Part shown: positions 1-59,194 of the stretch, in pieces
Layout: every line of letters begins with the position of its first letter
Numbering within the stretch: the stretch's first letter is position 1
NCBI GenBank assembly: GCA_964035545.1
Contig: OZ037772.1
Coordinates: forward strand, 3,625,538-3,689,537
Direction: 5' to 3'
DNA from: Bugula neritina
Lineage: Eukaryota; Animalia; Bryozoa
Length of the DNA stretch: 64,000 nt
Notes under the pieces: generated by a model
What the model was told of the DNA's origin: nothing
Seen by the model: only the letters and a program-made list of their open reading frames with translations
Database searches by the model: none
Translations under genes and position numbers: made by a program

Positions 1-1120
1 TAGGGGTGGTGTTGCATTTAGTAACACTTCTGTTGTGAGCAGTGATGGTCTGCTCTAAATTTGGGCAGCAACTGTAGCTGAGTTTGAGTGTGTTTTTATT
101 AAATATTTTGTGCAGTGGGTGTTTGGTGTTGAATATATCTTTTATCAGCTTGAGGTATATGGAGCCGATTTTCGTCTTTACATTGCGGCTATAAGGTGGA
201 TTGTACCAGATGACTTGTCTTTGTCTGATGGGTTTGATGCTTGTATTGGTGTTGTCGGTATAGTCTTTGTATTTGAGTTGGTAGTCATATCCGCTTTTAG
301 CCAAAGCATCTTGATATAGTGGGATGGCATTGTTGAAGATAGTTTCATTGGTAGATATGTCACAAAGTCTGCGGTTTATAGATTCTGGTATGTTATTCAG
401 TATGCTGGGAGGATGGTTAGAGTCTTTGTGTACATACAGAGGGATGTTGTTGGGCTTGGAGTACGGTGTATGATGTTTCTTGACCAGATCTAGGGTGACG
501 TCTAAATAGTCAGTTGTCTTGATATTAACATCTATGGTGATCTTTAGACCGTGTGACTGGAATAATATGCAAAGATCTTTTTTCAGTCTTTCAGCTAGTT
601 GTGGTTTAAGATCTGTTACACCTAGCCCATCGTCTCTATATAGTCCAATGTTAGCTTTGAACTTTTTTGAGATTTTACTTAACAAAAATAATCCTACTAA
701 TTCACATGTTTCAGCACCATCATGTGAGCCCATAGTGACGTCGAACAAATTATCTGATTGTCTTTTACCCCAAGATGAGTTGTCATGCACCAATATGGAT
801 TTTTTTGTGTGCAATATGATATTCCGTTCGTGGTTGCTGACTGTAGTATGCAAGTTGGCAAAGTCTAGAGAATCAGATAGTAGCTTTGGCGATATAGATG
901 GATAAAATTCTACAATATCGAACACGATAAAAGTGTGCCTGTTTGTGGTGGTCAAATTGTCAAACCAATGTAAAACTGCAGATGTGCTTTTCCACTGATT
1001 TAGGCCAAGTTTGCTGTTTATCGATGTATTAATTCTGTCAAGTAGTTGTTTACTCACCCTACCTATCTCTGGTTTGGTGGGGTTAATAAGGCGGCAGGTG
1101 GGGTTAGTTATGTAGTTAGC
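1..1120 (-). mobile_element. Penelope-like retroelement (Naiad-like clade) reverse transcriptase, 5'-truncated, runs off the window edge
   Basis: Uninterrupted minus-strand frame 1120->2 (373 codons; not in the ORF track because there is no stop inside the window): ANYITNPTCRLINPTKPEIG...FIVFDIVEFYPSIS...FDVTMGSHDGAETCELVG...IGLYRDDGLG...DYLDVTLDL...YVHKDSNHPP...IWYNPPYS...KLSYSCCPN. These are PLE RT core, thumb and linker motifs. A GIY-YIG domain would lie beyond position 1. Confidence 0.92.
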
Positions 1121-1560
1121 CTGGAAAATTCTCAGAAAAACTCAACCATACAACAACAACACTAAAATCTGTCAGCTATGCTCATGGGAAAAATTTTTCA
1201 TTCTTTATAAGCCACAGTTGTCTTCCCTCAATAAGCGCTATGACTTTTTATCCATATGCAGACATAGTAGTAAATTTCTACTCAAGAATGCTGTAACATA
1301 GCCAATTAATTACAATGCTACCTTTTTGTTATATTTTGATCTTCTAGCTTTAATCTGTGTATATTTACATATTACATTATTTATAGTTGTAAGCAATCAT
1401 AGTGGCTAATTTATCTGACGAGTGCACATCGTTCTTGTGTACGAAACTACTAGTAATAAATGCCATTATATTAATCAAATCTCATTTTACTTCTTCTAAT
1501 GTTTACGCTCTAGATTTATTTCTATAGAGCACTCTAGTAACGTTTTATAAACACTCATTT

Positions 1561-1563
<3 letters not shown>

Positions 1564-1642
<79 letters not shown>

Positions 1643-1661
1643 GCATATATATATATATATA
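1564..1661. repeat. (TA)n microsatellite
   Basis: Near-pure TA run immediately left of where block A/B homology begins. Confidence 0.95.
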
Positions 1662-2267
1662 TACATGCATATATCATCCTACTAGTAATGGATTACTAAG
1701 TACAACTCATCCTATGACTCACTCTTCTTATGCTAGCTGCACGAGATAGACAACTCACACGTGACACACACTCACAGTGCACTAGCTCTTGACACATTGC
1801 CAAGGATGATGAAATGACAGTTTCGCACCACTCCTAGCAGTTAGAGTGGCAGGGAATAGTTGTAGTATGTTGTAGTATTGGCTCCTCAGAATTCACCCCT
1901 CAGTAATTAGCTGCATTGCACAAACTTGCAACAATAGTGAATAATTATTGACAATATGGCCTCCACTCAGTAGTTAACTAGTAATTTATCTTGTCATTTT
2001 ACTCTACAAGTTACAGTTGAGTCTGTTTGTTGAGTAGCAGTTCTTTGTCATGAGTGACTATTTTCCAGCATATTAAGTACATAATATAGTCAAGTGTGTT
2101 TGTGTGATAGCCTGTGGTCTATATAATGAATGTGTGTTGATGAGTGATGAGTATTTATTTGAGTATTTGTCAAGGACATAGCTGTGTGTGTGGATGGAGT
2201 ATTTCATTACTTGAGATATACTAAACACAGCTAACACAGGTAACATACTGATTGCTATATATTGTAG

Positions 2268-5200
2268 GAAAGATCACTATGACATCACAGATCCCACAAC
2301 ACTACCAGTAGCTCAGCATGGAGACCCGTTAGAATACAAGTCTCCACCCAAACCTGCACCCATTCCTTGCGATGTGTGTAAAGGTGGAACACAAGCTGCT
2401 GTGTTTTGTCTTGAGAGTCAAAAGAAATTATGTCAGCAGCATCAAGAAGTGAGTCTTTCTTATATAATTTCTCAAGATTAGTTACTAAACCAGTTCTGGT
2501 TTGTGTGTAGAATATTGTTGAAAAGAAATGTTGAGTCTGTAGGACTTTTTATACTAAACACACAGTTTCACAGTGCAGTGAGTCAACTATGACAGACTTG
2601 TTGGTGAAAATACAACCAACTAAACTGTTGACCTTTATTATACAGAATCACAGAGAGCTGATGGGAGATAGACATCAGTTTATTGACATTGAGGTCTACA
2701 GAGCTTCTCCCCAAAGATATACTATAACTAAATGTGAACATCATAAACAGGAGCAGCTGACAGAAGTGTGTTCCAAGTGTCACCAGATATTCTGTATGAG
2801 ATGTGATATGAGGACTGGCTGTAAGGATAAGACAGGTATTTACTTGCTATTTCTATTTCTGTAGAAAGAAACTGAGAAATATTACAAGAACCTGTTATTT
2901 ATTATTTTATTATTAAAGTGAGTTATGTAACAGTAAAAGAGGAAGTAAGTTTGTCAGCATTAAGGTTTGTGAGACAGAAGTGGATAGTGCAGGAGTTTAT
3001 ATTCTCACTGTTATGTTGAATATTTAGTATATTTCATCCTTCAAGTGTCTGTTTCCTTGATAAGATGGTATAGGCATAGCTTTAACTCAGTGGTGTCCCA
3101 CCTTCTTCATACCATCCTCCTTTTTATGATTATTTTCTATTAAGTTTCCGCCTTTTTGATAAAATTGTAATTTCATTTATAAAGAAAATCTGGGACAGGT
3201 TGTTTTCCTAATAATTCATTGAGTGTAGAAAAAAGCACATTGTGTTTGACATGAATTAGTGTCTGCCACAGCTTCAGTTCAGCTTTGAAAGCATTGATGC
3301 TGCTATTAAAAGCAGTGAGTTGATGATTATAATCATTCATTTTAGGTTCAGAGTTTTTAGTACAGCAAATATATCTACTAGGTATGCAATAAGTAGTTTA
3401 TGGAGATCAGATTGACTCACTGCAAAAACTTGCTGTTGGTTTTTACTTTCAAGAAACTTTTTAACCTCCATTCATAGTAGGAGGTGTAGCAGCTAGGGTA
3501 GAAAAGGAAAAGGCACTTTGTGTTTGGCATGGACCAGTGTCTGCCACAACTTCAGTTTAGTTATAGTTATACATATACATGTAACCTGGAAAACAAGGCA
3601 AGAGCTCAAAGAGCTGGTAAACTGTGTGAATTTTTTAGAAATTAAACCCCTAAAAAGCCCGAATTCCTTGCAAGGGGAATCCCCCAAGGTTGGGAGCCAC
3701 TGCTCTAACTTTTTCAATTATATTATTCCAAGTGCAGTTATTAATGAGCTAACCTGTGAAATATTTCTAGTCCAACCAACTGTCTACTTATTACATAGTA
3801 TGTGTGTAGTGATACATCATCAACCTGTAGTTACAGGTAGTAGGTGTAGGATAAGTACAATGTCACATCTATAATAATGTTTTTATAAATAGTGTGATTT
3901 TATGTATACAGAGGAGACAGTAGCATTCCATGACTTGGCATCTTTGAGTGATTTGTCTTGTGAGTTACGAGAAAGTCTGACTAGTGGAATAGAGACTCTG
4001 TCTGAGAAAGTTGCAGAGTTGAATGACATCTCAAAGGATGCCTGGAAAGAACTGAGTAAAATAGAAGATGAAGTGAAGAAGATGGTTGCCAGAGTAAACG
4101 CTAAAGCTAATGCTCAGGTATGCTAACACGGTGATGTCCTCTAATGTATTTCTGGTTGGCTGAAATTAGGTTTTGCATTTGGTTTTTGAGTTGTAAATAG
4201 AAATAAATTTCATTTGTCACTAGAATTAACTGGCCATTAAAGCTTTATCATTCTGTGAACAAGTAGCAGTAGTCATTCATCACATGTTACTCAGTGCAGA
4301 GGAACCTGTCAATACAGATGACTCACTCATCCTTCTGCAACTGTCAATCACTCACACAGAGAGGTTGGCTGTGTGAGTGATTGACAGGTGTCAGGAGGAG
4401 GAGACTAGTCACGTGATGTACTAGCTCTCTGCTGTGTATAGAGTGTCACGTGACTGAGTCATTGTCCACTCAGTGGGCAATCTGTTATTTTCATTTCAAG
4501 TGCAGAGGTTGTGAGGTGCAGAGGTGGTTACACTGTGTTACTATTTATTAGATAGAAAAGATTAGAAAGAGAGCTACAAACCTGAGGCTAGAAATATATG
4601 GATATTTGAAGAGCTGCACACAGATAGTGGATAATTATAGAATAGAGCTGGCCTTGAGTAAGACAATGGGCAGACAGTCTCTGCTGGACACAGTACAACA
4701 TGCAGTTGATAAGTTCAATGATGCAGGGATTGTGAGAGACTACAAAGAGATGAGTGAGAAGATGGAAAAGGCTACAGATATTGGTGTAATAGAGAAGTGT
4801 GTACTTCCAGACAGCATCTTGGTACCAACATGTAGGTGGAGTCTATAAATATTAACACTAACTATAAATAACTTTCTGCTTGTAATCATGTGAGTTGCTT
4901 TTACTGAATATTTTAATAGTAGAATAAGTAGATAGAGTTTATTTATTAGAGAATTAAGTTTTTTTTCACTCTCACATTATGAGACATTTCTGCAGTGTTT
5001 CAGAGTTTATGATGTATAAGTGAGCTGCTAAACTGTGTTATGCTGACTACCTGCTGTCAGTATTAACAAGATATTCTCACTTAGACCTGTGCATCACGTA
5101 GCAACTTGTAGTAACTACAGACTGCTTGTATTTAAACATCTTTTACTTTTAAGTTTGAAAAGCTGTTCCCACCTCCTCAGGTGATGAGATTCTCAAGTTA

Positions 5201-7050
5201 TAGAATTGTTATTTTGTTGTTGCAGACAGTGAAGACAGTCTGGGACTGAAGCTGCTGCAGCCACCATCTTCTCTCCAGTCTGATGGACTTCCTGTACGTG
5301 ACTGGTGTTTCAGAGTAAACATCTCAGCTGATGGACATGTGATGTGTCGGACAATAAAAGGTGTAGAAGTAAGAAATAGAGACACTCTGGATACTATCAG
5401 CTCAGTGGAGGACACCAACACTACAGGGTGGTGGGAGAGAATCCAACCTGAAGGGGTGATGGTTGGCTGCTGGTATAACAAGAAGGAGAAAACAGCTGAA
5501 GTCTCACTTCTTGATCCGAACTCCTTTGAGAAGACTCGCTCTCTCTTCAAGCAGTCAGTAGATGGACCCTTCCTCACTTACTATAGTATAGCTCAACACG
5601 ACTCACTGCTCTATATTGTAGACACGAGTGAGAAACAGCTGGTAGTCTGTAACCTAGTTGACAATAAAATACAGAAGTTCTCACTTCCTGAGATGAAGTA
5701 CCCTCACTCTGTATGCATCCTCCCAGACTCAACTCTCCTCATAGGAGACTGGACTCCAGATGGTAAAGTGAGAAGATATAAAGTAGAGAACACAACTCTC
5801 TCTCTGATGTGGGAGTTTCCTCACATCTCATGGCCAACTGGTATTTCCTTTGATCCAACATCTGAACTGATTCACATCTGTACAGAGATAGGACCTCTCC
5901 TCATCATCTCACTGGAAGGTAAATACTCTGTTAATTATAGTAAGTCTAGTTATTTATATATAATTATGTTGCAGTAAATAATATATTTTAATAATTAACA
6001 GTAAACAACTTCCACTCATAAGATATATTATGATATTGTTAGTATTTATCAAGTCACTGATGTTATTTTTAGCTGAAAGTTATGTAATAAAGACTGTAAC
6101 ATGCTGATAGTAGATGTTATATTCTTCATCACATGACTTGTAGCTAATAATAATGTTAGTGAATAATACTGCCTCCCTACAATAAGTTTATTTCCAGCTG
6201 CAGTAACATGCAGGGTGTAAGCACAGGTAGAAGTGTATATTATACTGTATAGGTTTAAGGTGTACTCTGTGCAGTGTGCAGTGAGCTCTTAGTAAACTCT
6301 CTATTCAGTCTTCCTTTCCAAGGGTTCACCTGGTAGAGTAGAGGATAGGGACTCCACACTGCTAAGTGAGTTGGTGCTGCAAGGGGTTCAAACCCACCTA
6401 TCAGCATGTCTAGTTAGTATACTATGCAAGTGTTTTACAGTAATTTTAGAGGTGCTCAGTCTAACAACTGTGCAGACTGCCAGCTACACATGAGTTATGA
6501 GTTGTAGTTTGACTTCAGTCTAGTGCTGCTGTTGTTTTGGTCATCAGATAATTTAATTATGAATAATTTGATACTTTTTGACTGCCATTACGGAGACTAT
6601 TGTAATTTGATGGTAGCTGGTAGAGCAGTGTTTGCTGGTGGAACTCAGGTGGCTGTGGTTGGTTGTTGTCAAGTATTTAATATGTGATAATGATAGCTGC
6701 AGTGGTATTAGAAGTAGACATGTGGGTGTGTTCTTGCTCAGAGCCACAGGCTAAGTTTATGGGTCAAGGTCAATATTGTTGTATAACGAGACACTGTTTT
6801 CTATTTGAGTATTTACTTCATGCATGTAACCTGCTTAGTTGCATCTTTAAAGGCAGTCTGTCTGTTTCTCTCAATACACACCAACTGATACAATATGATG
6901 CTATTGTTTACAGGTCAACTGGTGCTTACAGTTCCCAGAGAAAGTCTTGGTGTGAGTAACTGGGTGTTGGACATTGCTGTGTATAACAGAGACACAGTGT
7001 TTCTAGCATGTAGAGATGGTGGTCTGAGGAGATACACAATAAAATACTAA
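2268..7050 (+). CDS. TRIM-family protein, paralogue A (B-box1, B-box2, coiled coil, NHL-like beta-propeller); RING exon not in window
   Basis: GT-AG exons with consistent phases: 2268-2448 (CDVCKGGTQAAVFCLESQKKLCQQH), 2646-2835 (CEHHKQEQLTEVCSKCHQIFCMRC), 3912-4117 and 4552-4831 (heptad coiled coil), 5226-5918 (propeller blades: YIVDTSEKQLVV, YPHSVCILPDSTLLIGD, WPTGISFDP), 6914-7050 (GQLVLTVP...LRRYTIKY*). About 562 codons with no internal stop. AATAAA near 7227. The first exon is phase 2, matching the RING exon at 62908-63089. Confidence 0.88.
3088..3702 (+). mobile_element. Non-autonomous hAT (Buster/Charlie-like) MITE in TRIM A intron
   Basis: Ends CAGTGGTGTCCCACCTT / AAGGTTGGGAGCCACTG; 8-bp TSD CTTTAACT / CTCTAACT with central TA. 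Related copies at 34102, 59195 and 63388. Confidence 0.8.
4272..4465. repeat. Palindromic/foldback intronic element (likely MITE remnant)
   Basis: Core stem GTCAATCACTCACACAG...CTGTGTGAGTGATTGAC with weaker outer symmetry; also present at ~35290-35480. Confidence 0.5.
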
Positions 7051-8612
7051 ACTTATCAGCTACAGTTTACTAATAATCAGCTCAGTGAGGTCCTGAGAGA
7101 TGAATTGGATAATATTTGTCATCAACATAATTATTTCATCACAATTCATCAATACACACACTCTGTAATTATAGTTAGATATGAGATGTTTTACTGTATC
7201 GAATATATGCTGCTATTTTACCATCTAATAAAGTTTATTTGTTAGTGAAAACATAGTCTGTTTTCATGCCTCTTTAGCTTTAGTTCAAGTTGAGTTCGGT
7301 TAGTAACAATAATCTATACTGGAGCAGTAACTGTAAATGACTTGTTTGTGAGAGAATTTATACACTGAATTGACATGCAGGTGCAAGTAACTCCAACATG
7401 ACTAAGTAAATTTATTACAACCATTCATAATAATATACATTCCACTGCTGTGTATACGACAGTATTAAGTAGCCAATCAAATTGTTTCTTGTCATGCAAT
7501 CAGGGATCTGATAAATAATACATAAGTCAATCAACTAAATATAAACACTGTTTTACTCTGCACATGAGCTGTCTGTGATGCAGCTGCTTTGTAAAATATG
7601 TGTAATTTGATGAGTTTAGTTCAATTGGTTAAAGTTTAATGATGACATGTTCCCCATTCACCTGGGAGAAATCCTATGAGGTATAATAGAAGACAACTCC
7701 TAAGCATGTCCAAAGGCATCCTTTTAGTAAACAATATATTGCAATGCTACCATCTGATTGGACAATTATGTCCTCATAAAATATAAGCTTAGAGCTCTTG
7801 AGTAAATTGAAACTAGTTGCCAAATGGTGATGGTAACATTTACATGTAAACTCAACTCTTTCAGGTATAGGTATTATAGTACTGATGGGTTTGTATTACT
7901 TTTACCTGCAGGGCTGACTACATTATAAATTGGTTAATTCAACTCATCTTGGATTCGACTACTACAACTTATATATATAGTATTCGGAATAACTCCAAAG
8001 TAGCATGTTTCTGTTAAAATAACATTTATAATAAACAGATAAATTATATATTTACTGATTCAATCACTATTTGAGTTTTCAAATTGAAATTCAATAAGAG
8101 AGATCAGCAAGTAATAATCATATGTTATGTAATAATATATGCAACAAAAAAGCATCATTATAAAATTTAACAAAATGTATTAGCAGTTATCTATACTGAG
8201 ATTATAATGTAATACTAATGTTGTAAAAGTATTGAACTATCAATTGATCAACCCCCTCTCTTATTATTTAACCTTTGACCTACAAACAATGCTTTCTTGT
8301 TGCTATTATACTGTCTTTTTTTAGTTGGCTCATAGAAACAGTTTCAATCTAACAAGGTAGTGTTGATACAAATCAGAGAATATGAGCTCAACAATAAAAC
8401 ATAAGAAATAAATATCCTCAATATCCTAACGAATATTCCAGAGAACACTGCAGGCTAAGCTAAGATATTTTACAACTACATGCAGTTGACATATCTTCAT
8501 GAATTGTGGACCATTTTGGTGCTTCTGTGTGCACAGACAAGTTGTAATGACTCCAACAGAAACTTTCTCAGTAGGTTTCAGTTCATCTTGAATATATTAC
8601 AGCTTGTTGTCA

Positions 8613-8762
8613 TTTGGCCTCAATATTATTGATGATACACTACCTTGTTTGGCCTCAATAGTGTTGATGGTACACTACCTAGTTTGGCCTCAATAGTATT
8701 GATGGTACACTACCTTGTTTGGCCTCAATAGTATTGATGGTACACCACCTTGTTTGGCCTCA
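8613..8762. repeat. 35-bp tandem repeat, ~4 copies
   Basis: Unit TTTGGCCTCAATAGTATTGATGGTACACTACCTTG; paralogue at 39643-39793. Confidence 0.85.
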
Positions 8763-9640
8763 TTAGTCTGGCTAATATAAAATTAACAGCACAGCTTGCA
8801 AGATTTAACTAATTTAACTTGGTTCATATTATGATGTTAATATGCTGACATTTATAACCTCTGATATATTTCTATGTTTATAACCTATCAATATGCTCTG
8901 ATCTACAGCCTTTATTGTCATTCAAGGTGTTGCTCACTGCTGGTCAACCCCATTAACCCCCAACTTACTGTCTACATAGAAAACTGTCTACTTCCCCTCC
9001 ATGGTACATAGCTCATACAATGTGTATAATTATTTGCTTTTGCACATTCATTACATAAAATACCAGCCATTGTGCTAAAAGTAGAGTTTTGTTGTAGTCT
9101 CACATATTGGAACATGGCCTTAAGATTTGTAGTTTCTGAAGCTTTTATTAAGCTAATGCAGGAGAAAATTGCTAAAAATTTACTGCAGTGAATCTTTGTA
9201 TAAACATTACTTATGAAATGCATATCTGTGGAATACTTGATCTACTCTGTATCATGTAAACTAACTTACACACAAGTTATATACAGCTACTACTAGATAA
9301 GGAAGTAATAGACTTACACTAACAGAGTTATTGACATGAAAAAGTAAATAATATTTAAATTGTGATGACTAAGTAAGTGGATGAGTCATAAACCAGTCAA
9401 AAAATAATTTCTACAAACAAACTTTATTGAGTGAATGTGACTACAGAGTCTTGACAACATAGCAGAGTAAATAATTATGTTACATAATCATTACTATCAA
9501 CATCAAATACTGCATATAAGCAGTGCAAGTTCTGTGGAATATATAATATTATACTGTGAGTAGAACACAATATATTATATTTGACATGTACTATTGATGA
9601 CCTCACTGAGCTGATTATTAGTAAACTGTAGCTGATAAGT

Positions 9641-9777
9641 TTAGTATTTTATTGTGTATCTCCTCAGTCCACCATCTTCACATGCTAGAAACACTGTGTC
9701 TCTGTTATACACAGCAATGTTCCACACCCAGCCACTAACACCAAGACTTTCTTTGGGAATTGTTACCATCAGTTCAC
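9641..9777 (-). pseudogene. Orphan inverted copy of the TRIM terminal exon (A-minus)
   Basis: After a TTTTTTAAAG acceptor it reads GELMVTIPKESLGVSGWVWNIAVYNRDTVFLACEDGGLRRYTIKY*. Frame, stop and a minus-strand AATAAA (~9423-9428) are intact. No upstream TRIM exons on this strand; homology stops at the minisatellite at ~10394. Confidence 0.85.
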
Positions 9778-10393
9778 CTTTAAAAAATATGTCAGATTGA
9801 ATCAGTTTGAGACAAACAGACAGACTACAGTGACATCACAACAGCTGACACCACTACAAGCAAGTTTCTACTTTCTAGTATATTATAGTAACTGAAATAT
9901 ATTCGATAATAATACAATAAATTTCAAATATATTTCTCACTCAGAAAGACTTCCTTTAAAGATGCAACTAAGCAGATTATGTTGAAGATAATAAAGTTCT
10001 ACCAGTCAGTATTGAATAATTCAATGAGCTGCTCTACTGTTTACTTCATAATAAATGACAACATGGAGAGACTCAACATAGAAATTTACCCCCTCAGCAA
10101 ATATGATTATACAGGAGAGAAGATATATAATATAAGTATTACATACATGAAGTAAATATTCTAACAGAAAATAGTGTCTCCTTATACGACTGTATTGACC
10201 TTGACCCACAAACTTAGCCTGTGGTTCTTATATAGAACACACCCACATGTCTACTTCTAATAATACTGCTACTGCAGCTACTCCAACATTATCACATATT
10301 AAATACTTGACAAGAACCAACCGCAGCAACCTCAGTCCCACCAGCAAACACTGCTCTACCAGCCACCATCAAATTACACTAGTCTCAGTAATA

Positions 10394-10650
10394 ATTACAT
10401 AATATAGGATATATTACATAATATAAGATATATTACATAATATAAGATATATTACATGATATAAGATATATTACATGATATAAGATATATTACATAATAT
10501 AAGATATATTACATAATATAAGATATATCACATGATATAAGATATATTACATAATATAAGATATATTACATAATATAATATATATTACATGATATAAGAT
10601 ATATTACATGAAATAAGATATATTACATAATATTAGATATATTACATAAT
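10394..10650. repeat. 19-bp minisatellite, ~13 copies
   Basis: Unit ATTACATRATATAAGATAT. Confidence 0.93.
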
Positions 10651-10873
10651 AATTATATACTCTTTCTATAATGTATAATCTTGCATACACATACAGCCAT
10701 TAAAACCTCTTGCCATTTAGTTTAAGTTTATCAATTTAGACACAAAATGCATTTGATCTTCAGTCCCATGACTGTCAAAACAACACATTTCACATTCATT
10801 GGTTATACAAGAGATTGTTTCTCCAATAATAGCAGCGTTACTCTAAATTAAAAAACCACTATAAAGTTATCAG

Positions 10874-11564
10874 TTAATTAAACAGAGTCATCTAAAGGGT
10901 ATACATGTAGATATAGAATAAGTTAATTGAATCGAGTCATCTAAAGGATATAGATATAGAATAAGTTAATTAAACAAAATCATCTAAAGGGTATAGATAT
11001 AGAATAAGTTAATTAAACAGAGTCATCTAAAGGATATAGATATAGAATAAATTAATTGAATAGAGTCATCTAAAGGGTATAGATATAGAATAAGTTAATT
11101 GAATAAAATCATCTAAAGGATATAGATATAGAATAAGTTAATTGAATAAAATCATCTAAAGGGTATAGATATAGAATAAGTTAATTGAATAAAATCATCT
11201 AAAGGGTATAGATATAGAATAAGTATATTGAATAGAGTCATCTAAAGGGTATAGATATAGAATAAGTATATTGAATAGAGTCATCTAAAGGGTATAGATA
11301 TAGAATAAGTATATTGAATAGAATCATCTAAAGGGTATAGATATAGAATAAGTTAATTGAATAGAGTCATCTAAAGGGTATAGATATAGAATAAGTATAT
11401 TGAATAGAGTCATCTAAAGGGTATAGATATAGAATAAGTATATTGAATAGAGTCATCTAAAGGGTATAGATATAGAATAAGTATATTGAATAGAATCATC
11501 TAAAGGGTATAGATATAGAATAAGTTAATTGAATAGAGTCATCTAAAGGGTATAGATATAGAAT
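10874..11564. repeat. ~43-bp minisatellite, ~16 copies
   Basis: Unit AGAGTCATCTAAAGGGTATAGATATAGAATAAGTATATTGAAT. Confidence 0.93.
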
Positions 11565-12008
11565 GGTAACCACAGACATCAGAAGAAGCAGAAGACACTT
11601 TCTACCACCAGACGTACCTCTTTGAAGGGAAGCTCCCCGAGTAGGAATTGTCCCATCATGACCATGCGGGCCACCCAGAAGAAGAGGATATCCAGTCCAG
11701 TCTCTAGCAGAGTACCCAGGTAGTAGGCTTGCAGGTCGGGGGTGTTATCTGGCCACCCCATAGTCTAGAAAGGAAATATTCCGGAACTAAACCATGTGTC
11801 CAGCACATCCTCATTTGTATAAAAGGCAGGAAATGGAACAATGTTCAGAGTTGTCTTCTCTGACAAACTGAAACTGGGGTTAATTTACTCAAAGGAAGTG
11901 TCTAGTCCGTGAACAAAAGAAAGTAAATTATCAATAAGTAGTTAGAGAAATGTAGCTCGCTGCTTTACTATAAAGGAGAAGAGAAAGTTGGAGATGTGTA
12001 CATAATGA

Positions 12009-12270
12009 ATATATACTCAATACATACTCAATACATACTCAATAAATATTCAATACATACTCAATACATACTCAATAAATATTCAATACATACTCAATAT
12101 ATACTCAATACATACTCAATATATACTCAATATATACTCAATACATACCCAATATATACTCAATACATACTCAATATATACTCAATACATACTCAATATA
12201 TACTCAATATATACTCAATACATACTCAATGCATACTCAATACATACTCAATACATACTCAACATATACT
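12009..12270. repeat. 11-bp minisatellite, ~23 copies
   Basis: Unit ATAYATACTCA; source of the spurious ORF 11996-12364. Confidence 0.93.
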
Positions 12271-15200
12271 TGAGCTCTCAGATGAAATAGACTTACCCTG
12301 GCTAAGATTGATGACATCTGGATGTACGTTAAACTTTATTGCTGCCTTTGACAGCGCTTCATGATAGGATCTGCCAGTCACCCAGTAGTTGTTGTCACTA
12401 GACTATGTAAAATATATAGAGGTTAAGAGGTCACTAGACTATGTAAAATATATAGAGGTCGAGAGGTTACTGAACTATGATGAATAGACTATCACCGGCT
12501 TTCCATGTACCGATCTGAGCATATCTCTCAGATGGATCGTTTTTCCACGAGAGTGTCAGATGGATCTCACGGAGTTGCCTCCTCTTAAGTGAAGAGTACT
12601 TTAATAGTATAATTTGTTCACAAATCTGGATGATTAAAGCTGCCGAGGTTAAAAAACAAGATTGTTGATGTCTAAAAAATAATGGTGCTTGTAAACAATA
12701 CACAACAAAGCTTTTAGTGTAAAGTAATATAGCCAATTTAAGATAATCACTTTTAATTTTTTAGCTCAACAGCTTAAATAAAATTAATAGCTATCTTGCA
12801 GATTATTCATAAACTTACAGGATTGTTAAGCTTGAAATTACGCAGCAAATAACTAATGAAAGTAAGTTTTACTAGTCATTTAAATTCAATTTAAATGCTC
12901 CAATTTTTTGTAATTTCTACTCTAATTTTATATAATTGAGTTTTTTTAATCATGGTACTGAAAGTCAAAGTTTTGGCATCTGAAAATGTGGCTATCGTAA
13001 TTATTAAGTAATTTGCTTAGCAATTATCAATAAGTTACTGAGTATTGATATACAATTATATATTTACCAAGTGTTTACCAGATCCAACTTCACAGTCACT
13101 ATACTCAGAGTACACAACTCCCAGTAAGTTAGTATCAAGCTAATTAACCACTAACCCCCTATTCACACTTACCGTATCGTACGCCGTAACAGCAAATATC
13201 AGCCATTTTTACAAATGTCTGAGCTTCCTGTACGGTGTTGCGGTACGGTAGGTTCAAGCACTGCTTGATTCAAATAAGTTGCGGCGGACTCCTATTGGAC
13301 AGAAAAACTTTTGCGTTAATTCATTGGATATAAATGTCCAATGTAGCGTCATAGATCGTACCTAATAGCGGACTTTGAAAACTTCAACCCGCACCTTAAA
13401 CCAAAATGGAATAATAAAATTAAAGAACTTAGGCTATCTCAAGTTCTCCACTACTGCTCCTAAGTGAGAAAGTAAGAATAGTTAGAGAGATCTACTGGAG
13501 TTACTTCAACTGGCAGCAAGAGTCAGCCATTATTACGTTGCTAAGCAACAAAGCTATTAGTGACATTGATGTCTACTAACCCAACATAGTTTCCAATCTA
13601 GTTGTGGCCACAATGATCTCTTCGTCAGAGTCTTCTACTTTATATGCAAAGGAAAGGAGAACTCCGAACTCCACCTTCTCCTTGTAGCCCGGCACAGAGA
13701 GCATAGCCCTTCCTGTCAACTCTACTTTGTCTACCTGCAATCAGTGATACAACTCTCTCAGACTATACAGGTCAAAGGTTAAACTGTAGTGTGTGCTTCT
13801 GAGTCACTGCGTTCGCATTCTTTTCTATTAGTTCACATTGTGTGAAAGAAATGAATATGTGGCTGTGGTCTCATTGATGTATTCATTCGAAGATAGTCAT
13901 AATGTAATATATCAGGTAGTGTCTGATAGAATATTACTGGATATTACTATTAGGTTAGTTACCACCAACACACAAGTCTCGCAGTGAATAACCAGTTGAC
14001 GTACACACAGCCGGAAGTTAGACTGATACTGTACGATATACCTCAATATCAGAGACGGCAGAGTTGAGAGTACAGGACCAGTTGACGAGTTGGTTAGCTC
14101 TGTAGATCACACCTTTCTCGTGCATTCTGATAAACGCTTCGTTCACCGCTTTTAAAGATTTCTAATAAACAAGTATATATGAGTCATGTGTCAAGTGTGA
14201 GCTGATTGGAGACCAGGCCTCATGATAAACCAATCATAGAGAGGATAACACACTGAGTCAGTAAACAGTCGACACGACATATAGACTCCACTACTCAAAC
14301 ATAATACATGTATAGAGAGGATAACTCCTCACCTCATCCATAGTGAACGTAGTTCTGTCCCAGTCATAAGACCCGCCCACTTTCCTCAACTGATGGTAGA
14401 TTCTGTCTCCTTTTCCATAGAAATTATATAATAACACTGACCAATCGTTGTGCTGCAAAACTTAGTTATATTAGCAACTTAAATAATGAGACCAATGATA
14501 GAGTGTGATGAAGTAAACCTATATTTAACTTTTTGTATATTCAATTATATATAAGAATTTTAACATATTAACGCTATTATATTATCTTATATCAAACTGT
14601 AGCAACTGCACACCAATAAGATAAAATAAAAACTCAAACCCGAATACTAAGTCGCTATGAAATGCATTTTCAAGATAAAATATTCCCTTACTGGTTTTTC
14701 CAGTCCCACACTCGTCTCACTAACTCATCTCGTCCCAAATCGTGTCGAGTTTTATTCTCTTCTCTAGCGAGTTTTTTCTCGACGACCACTTGTGTGGCTA
14801 TTCCTGCGTGGTCACATCCGGGTACAAACAGTGTCACCTTCCCATTCATCCGGTGCCTGACAATATAACAGAACTGACACCTGCAGACACCTGATAATGC
14901 AAGCATATCAGACACCTGCAGATATTCTGGAAAGGTGCTGAGAGAAATATCTGTGGTTGAAACAACATCAATATAATAAATGACTGACTTACGCCAACCG
15001 GTACTTAACACAAATTTTATAAGCATTCAAAAAAGAATCAACAGGGGGATGTTCATAGCCTGTCTGTGGAATATGTCAGAGTGAGTTGGCAAGATGCCAA
15101 AATGTCATGTAGTCACCACCAGAGGAATGGTGTCTACTGTTACATGCTATAAGCTACATACACCACCAGTTTAGTGACTAGGTAAGTACGGAGTTGTCTC

Positions 15201-15637
15201 ATCTATATGAATGAACATCTCACCACCAAACTATCGCATCCTCAACCGCCCCCGTGAGGGCCTGTCCTAGGTGAAGAGTCCCGGTCACGTTAGGGGGAGG
15301 GATCATGATGATAAACTTCTCTTCAGGTGTGAGTTTCAGTACATCTCTACCTGTTACAAAGCAACCAATCACATCTCTCTCGGTTACAAAGTAAAAAGCA
15401 ACTAATCACACTACCTGTTACAACAGAGTAACAAATCACACATCTACGTGTTAGAAGTAACCAATCACACGTTATAGACTTTACTATGATGAGAAGTGTA
15501 CCTTTGAGATTATACTCAGGTTTGAAGAATCCTTCCTTCTCCCACCAAGAGTACCAGGCAGCTTCCACATAGGACGGGGAGTAAGAATCAGGCATGGGAC
15601 ACGTCGTGTCTAGAATAACAGAAAACTATAAAGTATA

Positions 15638-15991
15638 GGGGAGCAGCTGTGGTCTAGGGGTTAGAGCGTTTGTCTAGTGAATATGAAGCCATTGTTTGAC
15701 AAAGGCCATTGGTGACGTTAAGAAGAGCATCCAGTCATAATTGCTCCTGTGCCTCATCTAAATAAGTCCTTAGCCTGTTTTAACAAAAATCCCTTTCCAC
15801 CAGGAGTCTCTCCCAAGGATGGTGACTATACACTGATATCTAGATATACTAAGTTGAGACTTGTCTTCTACTGGTCCATACAGTTCAAATATGATGAACA
15901 CATGTATAAATACAATAATCTATCCATAGCCCATAGTCTAACCACCAACAAGAACGAATAAATAAGACTGTGGCCTGACACTACTACTACA
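15638..15991 (+). mobile_element. Degenerate tRNA-derived SINE in VARS intron
   Basis: tRNA-like head GGGGAGCAGCTGTGGTCTAGGGGTTAGAGCG (A box), a central TGGTGACGTTAAGAAGAGCATCCAGTCATAA resembling the MetaSINE core, and a (CTA)n tail. Confidence 0.55.
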
Positions 15992-17182
15992 ACTTATATA
16001 ACTTATACACAGCAGACTGTTAGGAGTATTTGAATCTGAGGCTATCCAATGTATGAGTAGGGCAGCCCTAAATGTAGGATATTGGAATACCATGTCTTAT
16101 TACTTCAGTCTAAAGCAGTGTTTATACCTTCACGATGTTCAGTCAGAAATTCAATTTTGATGAGTTGCATTTCATTGTAAAAGCCAATCATCAAAATTTT
16201 TGCTTTGTACATGCCTAATCAAATAATTTTAGAGTAACAATCAAAGGGAATGATAACTCCTTTAGATATGGGGTATTCATGTTTATAATTACACCGGCTG
16301 TCTTTTTCAATTATCACTTTTATGCTGTCAACTTAATTTATTACGTTTTCAAAGGGCATCAAATAGTGATTAAGCGAGTTATATTTGAGTATTACAGAGT
16401 GAGCTTCCTTATTAATATGATTTCAACAACTTTAAGTAAGACTGCTTACACACATAACTGTGTGTTCACTAGCGAGCAGTGTACACTGATAAATCAGTGC
16501 TTCAACTGAAACTTGTAAGTAAAGGAATGAAGAGCTCAATTGAGTATAAAATGTAGAGAATAATTGAACTGAACCTTTCTTATGGCCAACTGGTGTGTCA
16601 TCGACATACGTTACTACAGCCTTCTCCTTTTTCTCTTTCACTTTTTTCTAGAAAAAAAAATAATCAAATTTGAAGAAAATAAAATGGAAATTGTTAGCTA
16701 CAGATACAGACAACTTCCAGGTAAAAGTACAGCCATACAGTCCCAATACGAATATGTAATTCAAGTAACACTTTCATGTAGAAGTACAACCATAAATATG
16801 AATAGAAAGTAACACAAATATATACATTTAGGAGCAGTAGTGTAGAAATCGAGATAGCCTAGGTTCTTTAATTTTATTATCAAATTTTGGTTTGGGGCTT
16901 GGGTTGAAATTCTTACAAAAACACAACTTCTTATGCTACATTTCTAATCTAGAACACAGGCTTTCTCAATTTCTCCATTACTGCACCTACCTTAGTATAT
17001 ATAGAACCTGTAACTAACTAAACAGACACCTCGGTAGTCGTGGCAGACTCTGCCTTCTGTTTAGCCTGCTTAGCTTGAAACTTGGCTAGTTTAGCAGCTT
17101 TAGCAGCTTCTTTCTATAACTCTTTCTCAGATTTCACCTTGACCTCGCCAGTTGGCGCATCACCAGGGTTCACTTCCGACAT

Positions 17183-17480
17183 GTTCGTTTATTGTGAGAC
17201 TTTCCTTAAAACACAATCAGCCGGCATGGAACTAATAGATATCTCAATACTAAACATACAAACTATTGACCCAGTATAGTTATAGACAGATATCTTAATA
17301 CTAATAATATAAACTAATAGCTCAGTATTGCGTTAGTTATGCGTGGGGGTTCAGTGATAACACGCCTATAAACCACACAGTTCAATAATGAAAGACTGTG
17401 ACTTTTCACGAACAGACATCTCATCTCTGATTCTAATGAAAAATCACGAAATTTTCAAACAAACGATACTGCATTTCAAC
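17183..17480 (-). promoter_or_regulatory. Probable retained VARS promoter/5' UTR region
   Basis: CpG-containing patch directly upstream of the VARS ATG (17182) in an otherwise CpG-poor background; deleted in block B. Confidence 0.4.
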
Positions 17481-18166
17481 TTTGTGACTATCACATGATA
17501 ATAATCATTGTCATTTGAAAGATTCTGCTAAAATCGAAATGCCAATGTTAATCACAAGGTCAACCATAAATGACTCAGTCTGATGACTGACGGTTATGCT
17601 TAATGATTAATTAGTAATATGAATAGATTGCAAGTCATCAGCATGATGATGGTGATTATTGCTTTTCACCATCAAAGGTCAAACTTTGTAATTGCAGCTT
17701 GAAATGTAAAATTAAATAATATTACTTTTATTTAATTATACAAGTATAACTTACCATCATAACAACATTCAACTTTATGTAGTCATTATAAACATGATAA
17801 TGGTTTACCTTTTACTTTAGGTGATCATTATACTATTCACGATTATCATTATGTCTACCATTATGATTATCTCAACTTTAACCTATCAATTACGATAATT
17901 AACCATTTATTTTTTAATGATAAAAACTTAAATCATTGAATGAACACTAAAAGTAATTTAAATTCACACTTTTATTATCATAACTATCAAATTAATATTA
18001 TAAGGCATATTTGATTTTTAGATTACAATAATAATTATCAAATCATGGTATAGAATTAAATATTATAGTTAATATTATTATAAATATAATTAATATAATT
18101 GTATTTATTGAAACTAAAATAGTAAGGTAAACTAAATGAATTATCGACATGAGTATGAGTATGAGT

Positions 18167-18680
18167 AGGCCACAACTAGAAGGTGCAGCAGCAATTTGAG
18201 ATCCCCGTTTGCAATACCTCATCAAAGATATAGAACAGGTGCAAAATAATGCAATCAGATTCATTGCTAAATTGAAAGGCAGAGACAGTATCACTGTGGC
18301 ACGTGACAAACTAAACCTAGAAACTCTCCCCGACAGACGCTTCAAGCTGAGGCACAAGTTACTGTTGCGACTTCTATCTAATGAGGGAAATCAGGCATCT
18401 CTAACCAACTCCTATGAACTGATGAACAGTAAAACCTAAAATACTAGGTTTACTAAGGCATCAAGCAGGGACGATCCCCCAACCATTTTTGCAAAATCAG
18501 CAGCCTACTACAGCAGCTTCTTTCCAAAAACAGCCCGAGAGCTTAAGTCTATGCTAAATAATTAGTCAATACACCAGAGTTGTATATGTGCAACATACTG
18601 AAAATACTTGCTAGCCTGTAATCGGCAACTGTAGAGGCGTGCCTCTTGCTACATGCTCTAATGCGTGTAAGAGGTAAGAG
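18167..18680 (+). mobile_element. 3' fragment of a CR1/L2-group LINE
   Basis: RPQLEGAAAI*DPRLQYLIKDIEQVQNNAIRFI...LETLPDRR...SSFFPKTAREL matches the post-RT C-terminus (RPxLEY..VWDP...IExVQ...FFPRT). It has in-frame stops and a (GTAAGAG)n tail. Confidence 0.8.
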
Positions 18681-19892
18681 GACTATCAATATGACTATCA
18701 ATATTAGTAGGAGTACCCAAGTACCAGTAGACATAGTAGCTGTAGAAAGTCTATCTCAATCAGTAACTGTAAGCCGTGAGGGCTGAGACTATAACTAGGA
18801 ATATAAAAAACTATAACTTGAGTATAACTAATTGAAGGTGAGTTAACATAAATTAAAAAATAATAAATATAATTACTACAAAATCAAAATGAAATATGCA
18901 TTATAAATATTTATATTTTTATTTTATAATAATCTTTTAATTTATTTATATCATTTTATTTAGGTTCATCACCTTTCATTATGATTAATGAAATTGATAA
19001 ATCATATTCATAACGATAATGATGATCACTTAAAAAAAATTGATAAACCCATAATCATAACCATAATGATTATATTTATTATTATCATTTATCGCTTATC
19101 AGTTATCAGTGATAATCATAATCATAATGATAATGATAATCTTGATCATAATCAATATGAATATCAATATCATGTTATACTTATTCAATAATTATAATTG
19201 ATTGATTCTTATTCATATTAATAATGAATAAAAAATTATATTAACACTACAACTTACTTAATTAGAGTATTACATTTAGTGATTTACTATTACTATTACT
19301 ATCGGTATTATCACTATTACTATTACTATTAGTATTACTTACAACTTGCTTATGCAAGGGAATTAAATCTTTAAAGCGTAGCATCCTTTTCAAGCAAAAT
19401 AAGGATAATAAGTTTCGTCAAATTGAGTTAAAAACTACAACTTATAAGTCACAAGTATAAAGCAACTTATGCTCAGTCATCACTAATCCTAGTGGGTACG
19501 GCAAGTATATAGCATAATTTATTTCACAATGCGACAAGATTATCTAGACGGTGCGCTTACGCCTCTCATTGTACTTAAGCAATATCCAATTGTACGGTTT
19601 TTATGACTTTAAAACCCGTTTTTGAGAAGCAAGGCTCAGTGTGGTATATTTAAGAGTGTTGCCATTAGCAAATCTTACGGAATCATATGGGCGCCATTAT
19701 GCCGAGATTGGTACCGCGAGTTTATATAAGTTAAAAAAGGAAAAATTTTGCCACTTTTGTTATTTTATTTTTTTTTATTTTATGTGTACATTTTTTTTTA
19801 ATTTTTTTTATTGGTAAAGTTTTTAAACACATTTTTAATGCACATAAAATTAAAAGAAAAATTAAAACTCAATCATGCACATAAATACAAAG

Positions 19893-21457
<1,565 letters not shown>

Positions 21458-21459
<2 letters not shown>

Positions 21460-24400
21460 GCGGTAAGCTTCCAGGTTATTTATTACATTTGAGCAAAGGT
21501 TTGCATGCTTTTCAACTGTTTTATCAGCATTTTATCCAATTTCTTATACGAAAACACTACAAAAATGTAAGTAAAAGTGGTCATATTAGGTGTCTTGGAC
21601 TTGCCCAGACTTGCCCGCGAGCGTGCCCTCCGTGTCCTATTCTGACGTGGGGATGGCAAAATAGCCCTATTGTAGCGTGAGTTTATATCGCGTAAAGTTA
21701 TTAAGAAGCGGGTTTGTCACAGATTCTCGTTATTCGTAGTTCAAATCACATGAATGTTACTCTTCGGGCGGCTACTAATAACTAACGTTAGCTACGCAAC
21801 ATCAAGAAAGGTAACTAATTTGACTGTTTTCAAATGGACTATTCCATTTCGCTAGTTTGTAACTTGCTGTAAATCACAAAATAATTATTTTCCCTATTTT
21901 AATTTCAATTATCATGTCGACCACACTACCAGAAAATTACTCTTAAATATGCAGTAAATGATGATTTTCAACCGTTTTGTGATGAATTATAGGTTAGTAG
22001 TTGTCTACGTAAAACCAAGTTTTAAAATTTGTAACTGAATCAGTGAAACTGAATCACAGTATCAGTATGACTATGAGTATCACTAGTCTATCACTATGTC
22101 TATGACTCTCACTCTAACTCTAAGTCTATGACTGTCGCCTATTGGTGAACTATTATTAATAATATTTAATGGTTATATTTATTAATACTATTATCAGTCA
22201 TAATGATAATCATATGACAGTATCAGTATGTTAATGTTACGGAGCAGAATCAGTTTCGAAACTAATACTTATAATATTAGTTATAACTATAAGTATAAGT
22301 TATACCAATAGCTATATTTATATTAATATAAATATTTATATTCATAGTAATACTAATAACAAATGTAAAATTATTATGGTAATAGTTATACTTGTAAGTT
22401 ATAATATAAAACAAACGACACAAGTATTAATTTGAACTGCTGGTCTTAAAATAAAAAGTAAAATAAATAATAATATAAATAATAAAATATAAATTATAAT
22501 AATTTAATTATACTAATACTAATAGCAATACTTATACAGCAATATAATTATAATAAATTTATAAAACTTAAACAACTTTAAATTTAAGGAACAACTTTAA
22601 ATACAAACAAAGATAATATTAAATAGTTATAATCATAATGATCATAACAATAAATATAATTATGATTCCAATAATTATCAATATATTATATAATATTTAA
22701 ATTATTTTAATTTATAATTATAATCATAAATTTTATAGTTATAGTGAATAAATTCAATTTGACATAACTATAATATTATAAAGCAGTCAGCCTATCTCTA
22801 ATGCTGATTGAAATTCAGATTGTTATAAAATAATCACAATCATAATGCTCAAGTTAATAGATTGGAAATTATTGAAAATTATGTTGATGCCAATATAAAT
22901 ATGACATTGTATGCATCCAAGTAGTGATGTTGTAATATATCTTGGAAGATAATTACATTATAATAAGAGTTAAATTCCTCTAAGTAACTTTTTTGCAATT
23001 ATTCCTTAGAATAACTATAACTTATACTCCTAACATTTAATAGCGCATTAGTTTTAGATTGAGCTACTAATTGTATTTATTGCATGTGAAAGTTAGTTAT
23101 TCTCCGCCAGCTGCATGAATGTGACTGGTAAATTTTGTAACCTTTGGCAGTAATAACTTTGTAGCATAAATTAGACACATTTTTATGAAAATACATAATT
23201 TTAATGCTATAGCTGCTAGTAATTCTAATGGGTGTAATAATATTACTTTCACTAGCATTAATTTTTACTTTGTTCATGCTTCATAAAGCATTTTCTAAAT
23301 TCTTTTTTGAATAAATATACATATAATGTGCTGAATAAATTACATATGTTGGGGTTCTTCCTATACTGCAGCTCAGCCTACACTCCCCGCCACAAATGTT
23401 CCTAAACTACTAGCTTCACCAGGATACAGATTGATGGAGCTGTATTGATAAAAACTTCTCTTTTTAGCAGTAGAGGCATCATGAAAAAAAGGCAAGTATT
23501 TTACTCAATAAGAATTCGGTTTTTTACTTCTACAAATTTGATAGCCTACACGATTCTATTTAAATGGAAACTGGTCTGACATAATGTGTCTACAATTTAT
23601 TAGTTATAATATAGTAAATACTATGCAGGCCTATAGATCAAATGGCTCAAAAAAAATTAAATAAAACATTACACAATGCTGTATTTATTAGCAATGTAAT
23701 ACTTAGCAACTAATTTCACATTATTATTGTTTGCAAAGTTTCATACATCTACATATGTTTGTTCAATTCAGTGTTCTGAAGTAGAAGGTTCCAACAGCAG
23801 GGAAAAGCCTTGAACAAGATATTATGTTCTACATCTCCAACTCATTTTAACTTTGCTGGTCAGTTCATTGTGTATCTGGAGCATAGTTTTGTATTTTCAA
23901 GTAGTCCATCAGATACCTTTGTAGATAGTAAAGATTAAAATGCTTGTGCAATGATGTCCATAATGTTGAACCGATTTATTGAAACTAAAACTGTTCTTAA
24001 TTATAACAAAACTTGACAATCTTTACATAAAGAATAATGTCCTATAATCTATCTTCATTGTAAACAAAATTAGAACGTTCCACACCAGCAAATTGTTTAT
24101 AATCATCTGTAGGTGGAAGACGCGTGCACTCAGTTATAAAGGCAAGCTGACAGTGGTTTTCTTTGCCTTCTATGAAGATTTGGAAAGAGCCAGAAAATTA
24201 ATACTCTATAACTGCAAAACCATGTTGTAGTGTCTTGTGTTATTGATTGAATCATCTAAAAGAAAAATTGTTGTATCATTATAATTTTACTGTTAATGAA
24301 TTAGCAAATCTACTTATCTTGGTAAATATATTCAAGAACAAATACTATAGTGTAACTCAGTTTTGGTTATGTGTATGCTCCTTAAGCGAATTTACAGCAG

Positions 24401-26541: not shown

Positions 26542-26545
26542 TTAT

Positions 26546-31838: not shown

Positions 31839-31840
31839 TT

Positions 31841-32043
31841 AACAAACTGCTTGAAATTTTCAAAATCGAAATCCAGGCTCCCCCTACGAAGCCCAAAATT
31901 CCCTCTTATAGGGGGATTCTCCCAAGTTGGGAACCACTGTGTTGAATTGACTTGTGTTTACTATCTTCTTTCCTGTGATTAGAAATATGTATGATGTTGT
32001 CATGACAACAGAGTTGCTGTAGCACAAAGTACAGTTTACTAGT
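31841..32043 (+). repeat. Homologue of the post-RING intron of TRIM C (63799-64000)
   Basis: AACAAACTGCTTGAAATTTT...GTTGGGAACCACTGTGTTGAATTGACTTGTG...CACAAAGTACAGTTTACTAGT matches 63799-64000, including ~100 bp of flank beyond the MITE end. Confidence 0.88.
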
Positions 32044-41428: not shown

Positions 41429-41429
41429 A

Positions 41430-43377: not shown

Positions 43378-43598
43378 AATTATATACTCTTTCTATAATG
43401 TATAATCTTGCATACACATACAGCCATTAAAACCTCTTGCCATTTAGTTTAAGTTTATCAATTTAGACACAGAATGCATTTGATCTTCAGTCCCATGACC
43501 GTCAAAACAGCACATTTCACATTCATTGGTTATACAAGAGATTGTTTCCCCAATAATAGCAGCGTTACTCTAAATTGAAAAAAAACTATAAAGTTAGA

Positions 43599-59088: not shown

Positions 59089-59194
59089 ATTAACCAACAT
59101 ACAAATGAGATGCTCTTGTCAGTCTATAATGATGAATATTATACACTGGAACTGGGTTACTCTCTCACCTCTCCTCACTGCAGCTCAGCTGGAC

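Follow-up and report, generated by a model that had tools for sequence, protein, structure and literature searches.

We show here that strong diversifying selection acts on about 29 codons in the propeller domain of a family of TRIM genes from the bryozoan Bugula neritina, and that the N-terminal module of the same genes is under purifying selection. Two of these genes, A and B, lie in a stretch of 64,000 nucleotides (GenBank assembly GCA_964035545.1, contig OZ037772.1, positions 3,625,538 to 3,689,537 of the forward strand), the whole of which was analysed and is called the window here. The family is large and young. We consider it likely that A and B are members of a large, transcribed TRIM family in which one face of the propeller is diversifying, and that the encoded proteins would act as cytosolic recognition receptors.

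The window is eukaryotic in character, with a GC content of 32.7% and spliced genes. Its comparison with itself reveals a segmental repeat, the two copies of which (1674-19240 and 32687-50053) are 93-96% identical. Each copy carries one gene on the plus strand, gene A in the first and gene B in the second. Every exon border of both genes is AG/GT and both reading frames are open. In canonical paralogues a RING exon (exon 1) joins the first base of exon 2 by splicing. The joints given below were seen in public sequencing runs.

2268-2448, plus strand: gene A exon 2, a linker and a B-box1-like Cys/His motif, placed by AG/GT borders and frame
2646-2835, plus strand: gene A exon 3 (B-box2), with a match to Pfam zf-B_box; joints 2448>2646 and 2835>3912
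3912-4117, plus strand: gene A exon 4 (first coiled-coil exon), placed by open reading frame and splice sites; joint 2835>3912 in four runs
4552-4831, plus strand: gene A exon 5 (second coiled-coil exon); joint 4831>5226 in four runs
5226-5918, plus strand: gene A exon 6, a linker and blades 1-5 of an NHL-like propeller; 25 positively selected codons
6914-7050, plus strand: gene A exon 7, the last blade and the stop codon; four selected codons; joint 5918>6914 in two runs
33281-33461, plus strand: gene B exon 2, aligned from gene A, AG/GT borders retained
33659-33848, plus strand: gene B exon 3 (B-box2), aligned from gene A
34927-35132, plus strand: gene B exon 4 (coiled coil), aligned from gene A
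35570-35849, plus strand: gene B exon 5 (coiled coil), aligned from gene A
36244-36933, plus strand: gene B exon 6 (propeller blades 1-5), aligned from gene A and identical to locus L029
37944-38077, plus strand: gene B exon 7 (last blade, stop codon), aligned from gene A

A sequence-only reading of this stretch had described A and B as TRIM paralogues with a frozen coiled coil and a hypervariable propeller face, and most of its observations hold. The second coiled-coil exons (4552-4831 and 35570-35849) indeed differ at 1 of 280 nt, and the next intron (intron 5), said to be a few percent apart, measures ~3.8%; divergence of A and B in the introns flanking the propeller exon is ~4%. A hand count of ~38 amino-acid differences against ~6 purely synonymous codons in the propeller exon (5226-5918 and 36244-36933) comes to 37 and 6, respectively, with NG86 estimates of 0.082 for nonsynonymous (dN) and 0.072 for synonymous divergence (dS), a ratio of 1.14. 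All loop motif pairs that had been listed (DWCFRV/DSCYTV and others) are found in A and B, and the description of A as Trp-rich and B as Arg-rich is in line with the family's 29 selected sites, where A has five Trp and three Arg, and B one Trp and seven Arg. Two statements went too far. Strand cores were said to be unchanged, but 19 of the 37 exon 6 changes fall within DSSP strands, several of them mid-strand. Neither is the coiled coil frozen: its dN/dS across the family is 0.45, with dS at the level of the local introns. The coiled coil is only moderately constrained, and the RING is the frozen part. By closeness, gene B ranks only 29th among the relatives of A (84% in exon 6, compared to 87% for the best relative).

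When dN/dS is computed exon by exon over 190 gene pairs, it is 0.06 in exon 1 (RING), 0.09 in exon 2 (linker and B-box1-like motif), 0.28 in exon 3 (B-box2) and 0.45 in each of the coiled-coil exons 4 and 5 (dS 0.031 in exon 5), reaches 1.28 in exon 6 (propeller blades 1-5; dN 0.079, dS 0.062) and is 0.89 in exon 7 (last propeller blade). Median distances in introns 5 and 6 are 0.034 and 0.040. Therefore, amino-acid-changing divergence in the propeller is about twice the divergence of neighbouring non-coding sequence. Median nucleotide distances over 30 loci are 1.8% in exon 5, 3.1% in intron 5, 7.1% in exon 6, 3.9% in intron 6 and 8.2% in exon 7; relative to the flanking introns, divergence in these 30 paralogues is about doubled in the propeller exons and about halved in the coiled-coil exon. 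The divergence pattern seen between A and B is not chance.

Site models were fitted with our own GY94/F3x4 likelihood code to a propeller alignment of 30 sequences and 280 codons, with branch lengths from an IQ-TREE M0 fit. Log likelihoods (lnL) are -6362.6 for M0 (omega 1.44), -6004.6 for M1a and -5604.8 for M2a. The gain of M2a over M1a (2 delta lnL = 800) places 9.1% of codons at an omega of 10.6, and the comparison of M7 with M8 gives 2 delta lnL = 839. Positive selection on the propeller cluster, as proposed in the sequence-only reading, is supported by these models and by the placement of the sites; the proposal was open to refutation by a propeller dN/dS of 1 or less across paralogues, and we find a domain average of 1.07-1.28 with ~9% of codons at omega ~10.6. 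A posterior above 0.95 is reached by 29 sites, each holding between 2 and 12 different residues; 25 are codons of exon 6 and four of exon 7 (alignment columns 247, 249, 253 and 268). As a control, the N-terminal part from RING to coiled coil (346 codons, 19 genes) has an omega of 0.215 and a likelihood ratio statistic of 3.9 (p = 0.14). Tree-free estimates of nonsynonymous and synonymous diversity (piN and piS) are 0.42 and 0.16 at the 29 codons, and piN/piS is 0.44 in the remaining 181 propeller codons that are not adjacent to selected sites. Nucleotide diversity at codon positions 1/2/3 is 0.44/0.46/0.19 at selected codons, compared to 0.043/0.028/0.051 elsewhere, and codon series such as NNC and NNG occur at selected codons. 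Positions 1 and 2 are near saturation and position 3 is largely retained, a pattern that speaks for selection on the amino acid and not for a local mutational hotspot. A mutational hotspot in the propeller, which the raised dS (0.06-0.07 compared to 0.03 in the coiled coil) had brought up, was rejected; we attribute the raised dS to conversion history, because dS varies between 0.03 and 0.19 among exons in a mosaic pattern. Selected sites are enriched in Trp (8-fold), Arg (3.6-fold) and His (2.5-fold), and the median number of these 29 positions at which two paralogues differ is 21.

Where these positions lie was read from an AlphaFold2 model of exon 6 (47 aligned sequences; pLDDT 83, pTM 0.81), which folds into four-strand blades with 19 strands in total; consecutive loops of an up-and-down propeller point to opposite faces in turn. 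Rather than being scattered, 23 of the 25 selected sites in the model are on the side of one predicted face, termed face 1, in loops and adjoining strand ends, one is on face 2 and one mid-strand (Fisher p = 9e-8 for face 1 versus everything else). Consistent with this placement, the loops of face 1 have a piN/piS of 2.51 and those of face 2 one of 0.82. The NHL register (Pfam NHL aligned at residues 158-181) puts face 1 at the D-A and B-C loops, which form the top face of propellers; we take this to be the face on which ligand is bound in the solved RNA complexes of TRIM-NHL proteins. The four selected sites of exon 7 occupy equivalent positions of the sixth blade, which is outside the model. 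The variable positions are predicted to form 12 short patches, two per blade, around the circular face. Sites with dN/dS>1 occur only in the recognition domain and cluster on one surface of it, which is how a diversifying recognition receptor was operationally defined.

The propeller itself is probably six-bladed and NHL-like. Foldseek returned generic propeller matches, including the NHL domains of Lin41, TRIM2, Brat, Thin and Mei-P26; it did not by itself separate NHL from WD40 or YVTN propellers, but VIA-align did. The best TRIM match in VIA-align is the TRIM2 NHL domain with Z 17.3 (2.8 Å over 199 residues), and Thin, TRIM3, Lin41, TRIM71 and Brat lie between 16.2 and 17.3. Glutaminyl cyclase (17.5) is tied with these TRIM-NHL domains, and YWTD propellers score about equally. 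The family sequence profile matches designed Pizza propellers (E 5.6e-8), which we take to be built from the PknD NHL propeller, and the PknD propeller (E 1.3e-3), and the nearest Atlas clusters carry PF01436. No filamin match was found in Pfam; about 25 low-confidence linker residues lie between the coiled-coil exon and blade 1.

The exon 6 protein has 125 matches in the genome. Of these, 75 match over the full length with an identity of 78% or more, 72 of them free of stop codons; 57 of the close copies are found in the first 4.4 Mb of the contig that holds the window, 10 on contig C3 and 8 on C2, with further distant copies (53-77% identity) elsewhere in the genome. We estimate at least 75 close paralogues and about 100 family members in all. 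The 20 full-length genes examined (L031-L050) are all intact seven-exon open reading frames of 617-622 amino acids with AG/GT sites kept, and exon length differences among paralogues are always multiples of three. Each of these 20 genes has the RING exon, the protein of which is 100% identical in 53 genome copies. One such exon lies in the window:

62908-63089, plus strand: RING exon of the next family member, with start codon and C3HC4 motif; its remaining exons lie past the window end

This exon passes the Pfam cut-offs for zf-RING_UBOX (31.5 bits, cut-off 25.2) and zf-C3HC4 (23.1 bits, cut-off 21), and its phase-2 donor is compatible with exon 2. Exon 3 matches zf-B_box with E 4.9e-5 and 23.8 bits, just under the cut-off of 24.1, with the Cys/His spacing visible, and exon 2 has a weak match to an ANCHR-like B-box (E 0.066). 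Exons 4 and 5 (~160 residues) are charged, with abundant heptad-like residues and no Pfam domain, and the coiled coil is read from their sequence. On these domain matches, namely the RING exon, the B-box exon and the weaker motif of exon 2, the family appears to consist of TRIM genes with a RING, two B-box-like zinc motifs, a putative coiled coil and a propeller. The TRIM identity claimed in the sequence-only reading is supported for the family, which is probably of the RING/B-box/coiled-coil type; A and B themselves have no RING exon nearby.

Transcription was analysed with contigs from four public runs aligned to positions 1900-7100, with reads accepted from 92% identity. Exon depth is 50-100x intron depth in three small RNA-like runs. 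All four runs have GT..AG joints exactly at 2448>2646, 2835>3912 and 4831>5226, and two of them also at 5918>6914. At 2260, loose ends contain the final bases of the RING exon, which shows that this exon is spliced to exon 2. Transcription and splicing of the family agree with the gene model; what is established is expression of the family and not of A or B in particular.

The protein searches yielded a single annotated full-length relative, a 'TRIM25-like' protein of the bryozoan Watersipora subatra, which is distant (E 5.9e-4). The propeller profile has 49 matches at E <=1e-3 among 1.84 billion representative proteins, nearly all of them exon-sized metagenomic open reading frames, which suggests that the propeller domain is lineage-restricted. 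Distant metagenomic relatives of exon 6 (P0033, P0009, P0029, P0034) have long insertions in the loop between blades 2 and 3, in one case of ~40 Asp/Asn/His-rich residues, and from these insertions the loop would appear to tolerate large length variation. A separate observation concerns exon 2, in which dS is 0.19 compared to 0.03 in its neighbours, with dN/dS of 0.09 (for example L047 918-1098 and L044 2513-2681), and one copy is shorter by an in-frame deletion of 12 nt. It would seem that at least two old types of exon 2 are maintained as a mosaic by conversion.

The first exon of A and B deserves a separate account. No RING motif was found upstream of A or between A and B, the sole one in the window being that at 62908-63089. 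Gene A lacks the RING exon together with the first ~1.7 kb of intron 1. The homology of both genes to canonical intron 1 ends as follows.

1560-1674, no strand assigned: end of A's homology to canonical intron 1 at a (TA)n tract, from blastn against full-length paralogues
31838-31841, no strand assigned: end of B's intron-1 homology, adjoining the end of the 5.1 kb element in two tandem copies; no RING exon

Upstream of the (TA)n tract the DNA is unrelated (window 1-1674), and B's break adjoins a 5.1 kb element that occurs as a tandem pair (21453-26544 and 26541-31841, 93-94% identical), so that foreign sequence separates both A and B from a RING exon (window 1-1674; 21453-31841). Among the 57 propeller exons on the contig, 48 have a RING exon within 9 kb upstream and five at 9-30 kb; the four with none nearby are A, B, one at the contig start and one with a stop codon. 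The RING exon nearest to A lies 34 kb upstream and is otherwise partnerless, and B has none. That exon (contig positions 3596435-3596614, ~29 kb before the window start, protein 100% identical) could be an orphan or else the first exon of A, displaced and separated from exon 2 by an intron of ~31 kb. Possibly, A and B are decapitated genes or variants that do without a RING. At conserved sites of the propeller A has three private changes and B has one, which is no excess over the family range of 0-5. A mini first exon of 14 nt at 1956-1969 (ATG in A, GTG in B) was considered for A and dropped: depth there is zero in two of the three transcriptome-like runs (X3, X5) and only ~6-14 in X4, the RING-exon tail is joined to exon 2, and canonical genes start in the RING exon.

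Two further copies of exon 7 lie ~2.5 kb behind the genes, in inverted orientation, and were found by self-blast, tblastn and translation.

9599-9807, minus strand: inverted orphan exon 7 with the end of intron 6, behind gene A
40635-40843, minus strand: inverted orphan exon 7 with the end of intron 6, behind gene B

Both are preceded by AG, have an open frame and end in YTIKY and a stop codon like the gene's own exon 7, from which they differ chiefly at the hypervariable positions; intron-6-like sequence accompanies them at 10139-10392 and 41175-41422. They could be donors for gene conversion. Short-period, satellite-like tandem arrays (steps of roughly 11-19 nt) occupy much of the intergenic space, at 10390-10680, 20067-21280, 41426-43390, 44150-44600, 45850-46430 and 58697-59090. 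A short open reading frame at 11579-11761 (minus strand) inside the repeat unit has a class-I aminoacyl-tRNA-synthetase-like motif, presumably of the valyl/isoleucyl type, and is probably one exon of a gene or gene fragment.

Several points weigh against reading A and B as diversifying receptors and have to be set beside the evidence above. Branch lengths in the codon models were fixed from M0, with only one free scale factor, and the four-gamete test fails for 38% of biallelic informative site pairs (29% of those within 30 nt). In a PHI-like permutation p is 0.007, and genes that are otherwise unlike share loop motifs such as SCYT; together, these three results argue for frequent gene conversion or shuffling. 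The likelihood ratio from a single tree is inflated by an unquantified amount, and the omega of 10.6 is approximate. Because recombination is frequent, we base our conclusion on the N-terminal control, the intron comparison and the codon-position pattern, all of which are tree-independent. The faces were assigned by strand order, not coordinates, in a five-blade AlphaFold2 model of exon 6 only, the Pfam NHL score of 12.8 bits is below the cut-off of 20, and the B-box, too, is just under its cut-off. A and B are without a RING exon, as few members of the family are. At most 40% of the exon 6 words of A were present in any public run. This ceiling on A's sampled exon 6 words is likewise seen in DNA runs labelled with the same organism; it hints at strong differences between individuals in sequence or copy content at the A locus.

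The recombination signals, together with the sharing of loop motifs by otherwise different paralogues and the intact inverted exon 7 copies that differ at variable positions, are what would be expected if the variability came mainly from directed mutation or from conversion of cassettes (orphan exons, other paralogues) and not from selection on point mutations. We regard this as very unlikely. Conversion only reshuffles variants and is unable to produce as many as 12 residues at a single site, the saturation of the first two codon positions next to a largely retained third is a sign that selection acts on the amino acid, neighbouring codons only a few bases from variable ones are invariant, and the N-terminal half, under the same conversion, is without a selection signal. 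Relaxed constraint or decay of duplicates, with introns and coiled coil homogenised by recent gene conversion, is rejected, and we find it hardly conceivable. It could draw on the pairwise ratio of A and B (1.14), which alone is not different from 1, on the several-fold variation of dS along the gene (0.03 to 0.19) and on the missing RING exons of both genes. Decay is at odds with the open frames of 72 of 75 exon 6 copies and 20 of 20 full genes, with indels that are all in frame, with a piN/piS of 0.44 in the propeller outside the 29 sites, with variation limited to discrete positions on one face, with transcription and splicing of the family and with numbers of private changes in A and B that stay within the family range.

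Selection may also be real and the target something other than a pathogen, such as RNA or protein of mobile elements, resident symbionts, or partners in allorecognition or reproductive conflict. The NHL domains of Brat and LIN-41 bind RNA, and the closest solved folds are RNA-binding TRIM-NHL domains, some of them with RNA bound. The enrichment of Trp, Arg and His at variable sites would suit nucleic-acid binding, transposon insertions are abundant in the array, and the runs that hold the sequence include a 'symbiont metagenome' study. None of our results separates the possible target classes. The proteins begin with the RING and no N-terminal leader was seen (no predictor for signal peptides or membrane segments was used), which makes allorecognition at the cell surface unlikely. 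Overall we judge a non-pathogen target to be unlikely; RNA or mobile-element targets would nevertheless be a serious alternative, because solved TRIM-NHL domains bind RNA. Recognition of pathogens is our leading guess, by analogy with TRIM5, finTRIM and the hypervariable fungal NLR-like propellers.

With A and B read as members of a family of diversifying receptors, the following picture is likely. Purifying selection keeps the RING/B-box/coiled-coil module, presumably for ligase activity and assembly, each paralogue presents a different Trp/Arg-rich surface on one predicted face of its propeller, and gene conversion reshuffles loop variants between copies. The variable face may bind a fast-evolving target, be it viral, parasite, symbiont or mobile-element protein or RNA, and the invariant RING/B-box/coiled-coil module would dimerise and ubiquitinate. 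A germline repertoire of cytosolic recognition receptors is the most likely function; E3 activity, the nature of the ligand and a role in immunity or self/non-self recognition are what we infer, rather than observe. An extended version, which we consider unlikely in its full form, would hold that the ~100 TRIM receptors make up a germline-encoded, conversion-shuffled repertoire in which the near-invariant coiled coil allows heterodimers of paralogues, RING-less copies such as A and B act as modulators or decoys and orphan last exons serve as conversion donors. If this was true, heterodimerisation of paralogues would multiply specificities combinatorially.

To our knowledge, diversified TRIM receptors have so far been known only with B30.2/SPRY domains and in vertebrates, and TRIM-NHL proteins are seen as RNA regulators that are conserved and present in single copy. 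A literature search found no description of such a propeller family, which is not proof of absence. The family would be a second, independent route to an intracellular recognition repertoire on the TRIM chassis, with a parallel in the WD40 propellers of fungi. Its 29 defined specificity positions on a conserved scaffold would offer concrete reagents with which to find out what is recognised within invertebrate cells.

Among known systems, the class VII TRIM-NHL proteins (TRIM2, TRIM3, TRIM32/Thin, TRIM71/LIN-41, Brat, Mei-P26) have a RING, B-box, coiled coil and six-bladed NHL-type propeller, as the Bugula family probably does, and are among the best structural matches (Z 16.2-17.3, rmsd 2.8-3.5 Å over ~200 residues). 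They are, however, single-copy, slowly evolving developmental regulators with a filamin domain in front of the NHL domain, whereas the Bugula family has no filamin domain, only 7-13% sequence identity to them, ~100 copies and a hypervariable ligand face. Large clustered families with positive selection confined to the substrate-binding domain were reportedly described by Thomas in 2006 for the F-box and MATH-BTB E3 adaptors of nematodes, which have been proposed as intracellular immune receptors. These differ in having other folds and in being cullin-RING adaptors rather than self-contained RING E3 ligases. Fungal HNWD propellers vary at a few hypervariable positions of the interaction face per repeat, with positive selection and with concerted evolution or shuffling of repeats. 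The NLR-like HNWD/NWD genes (HET-E, HET-D, HET-R) thereby combine a WD40 propeller that has a hypervariable interaction face with a conserved effector or oligomerisation module (PMC4986451), similar to the Bugula genes, but with a WD40 fold, a NACHT/HET architecture and shuffling between repeats inside one gene, and in fungi. Diversified TRIM-B30.2 families, such as primate TRIM5alpha/TRIM22 and teleost finTRIM, btr and TRIM35-like (PMC3137616, PMC3845644), likewise have a conserved RING/B-box/coiled-coil part and positively selected loops in the C-terminal recognition domain, and finTRIM genes are clustered, too; they are vertebrate and use B30.2/PRY-SPRY instead of a beta-propeller. Thus, a TRIM chassis with a diversified recognition domain is already known, and the hypervariable NHL-like propeller in ~100 copies is the new part.

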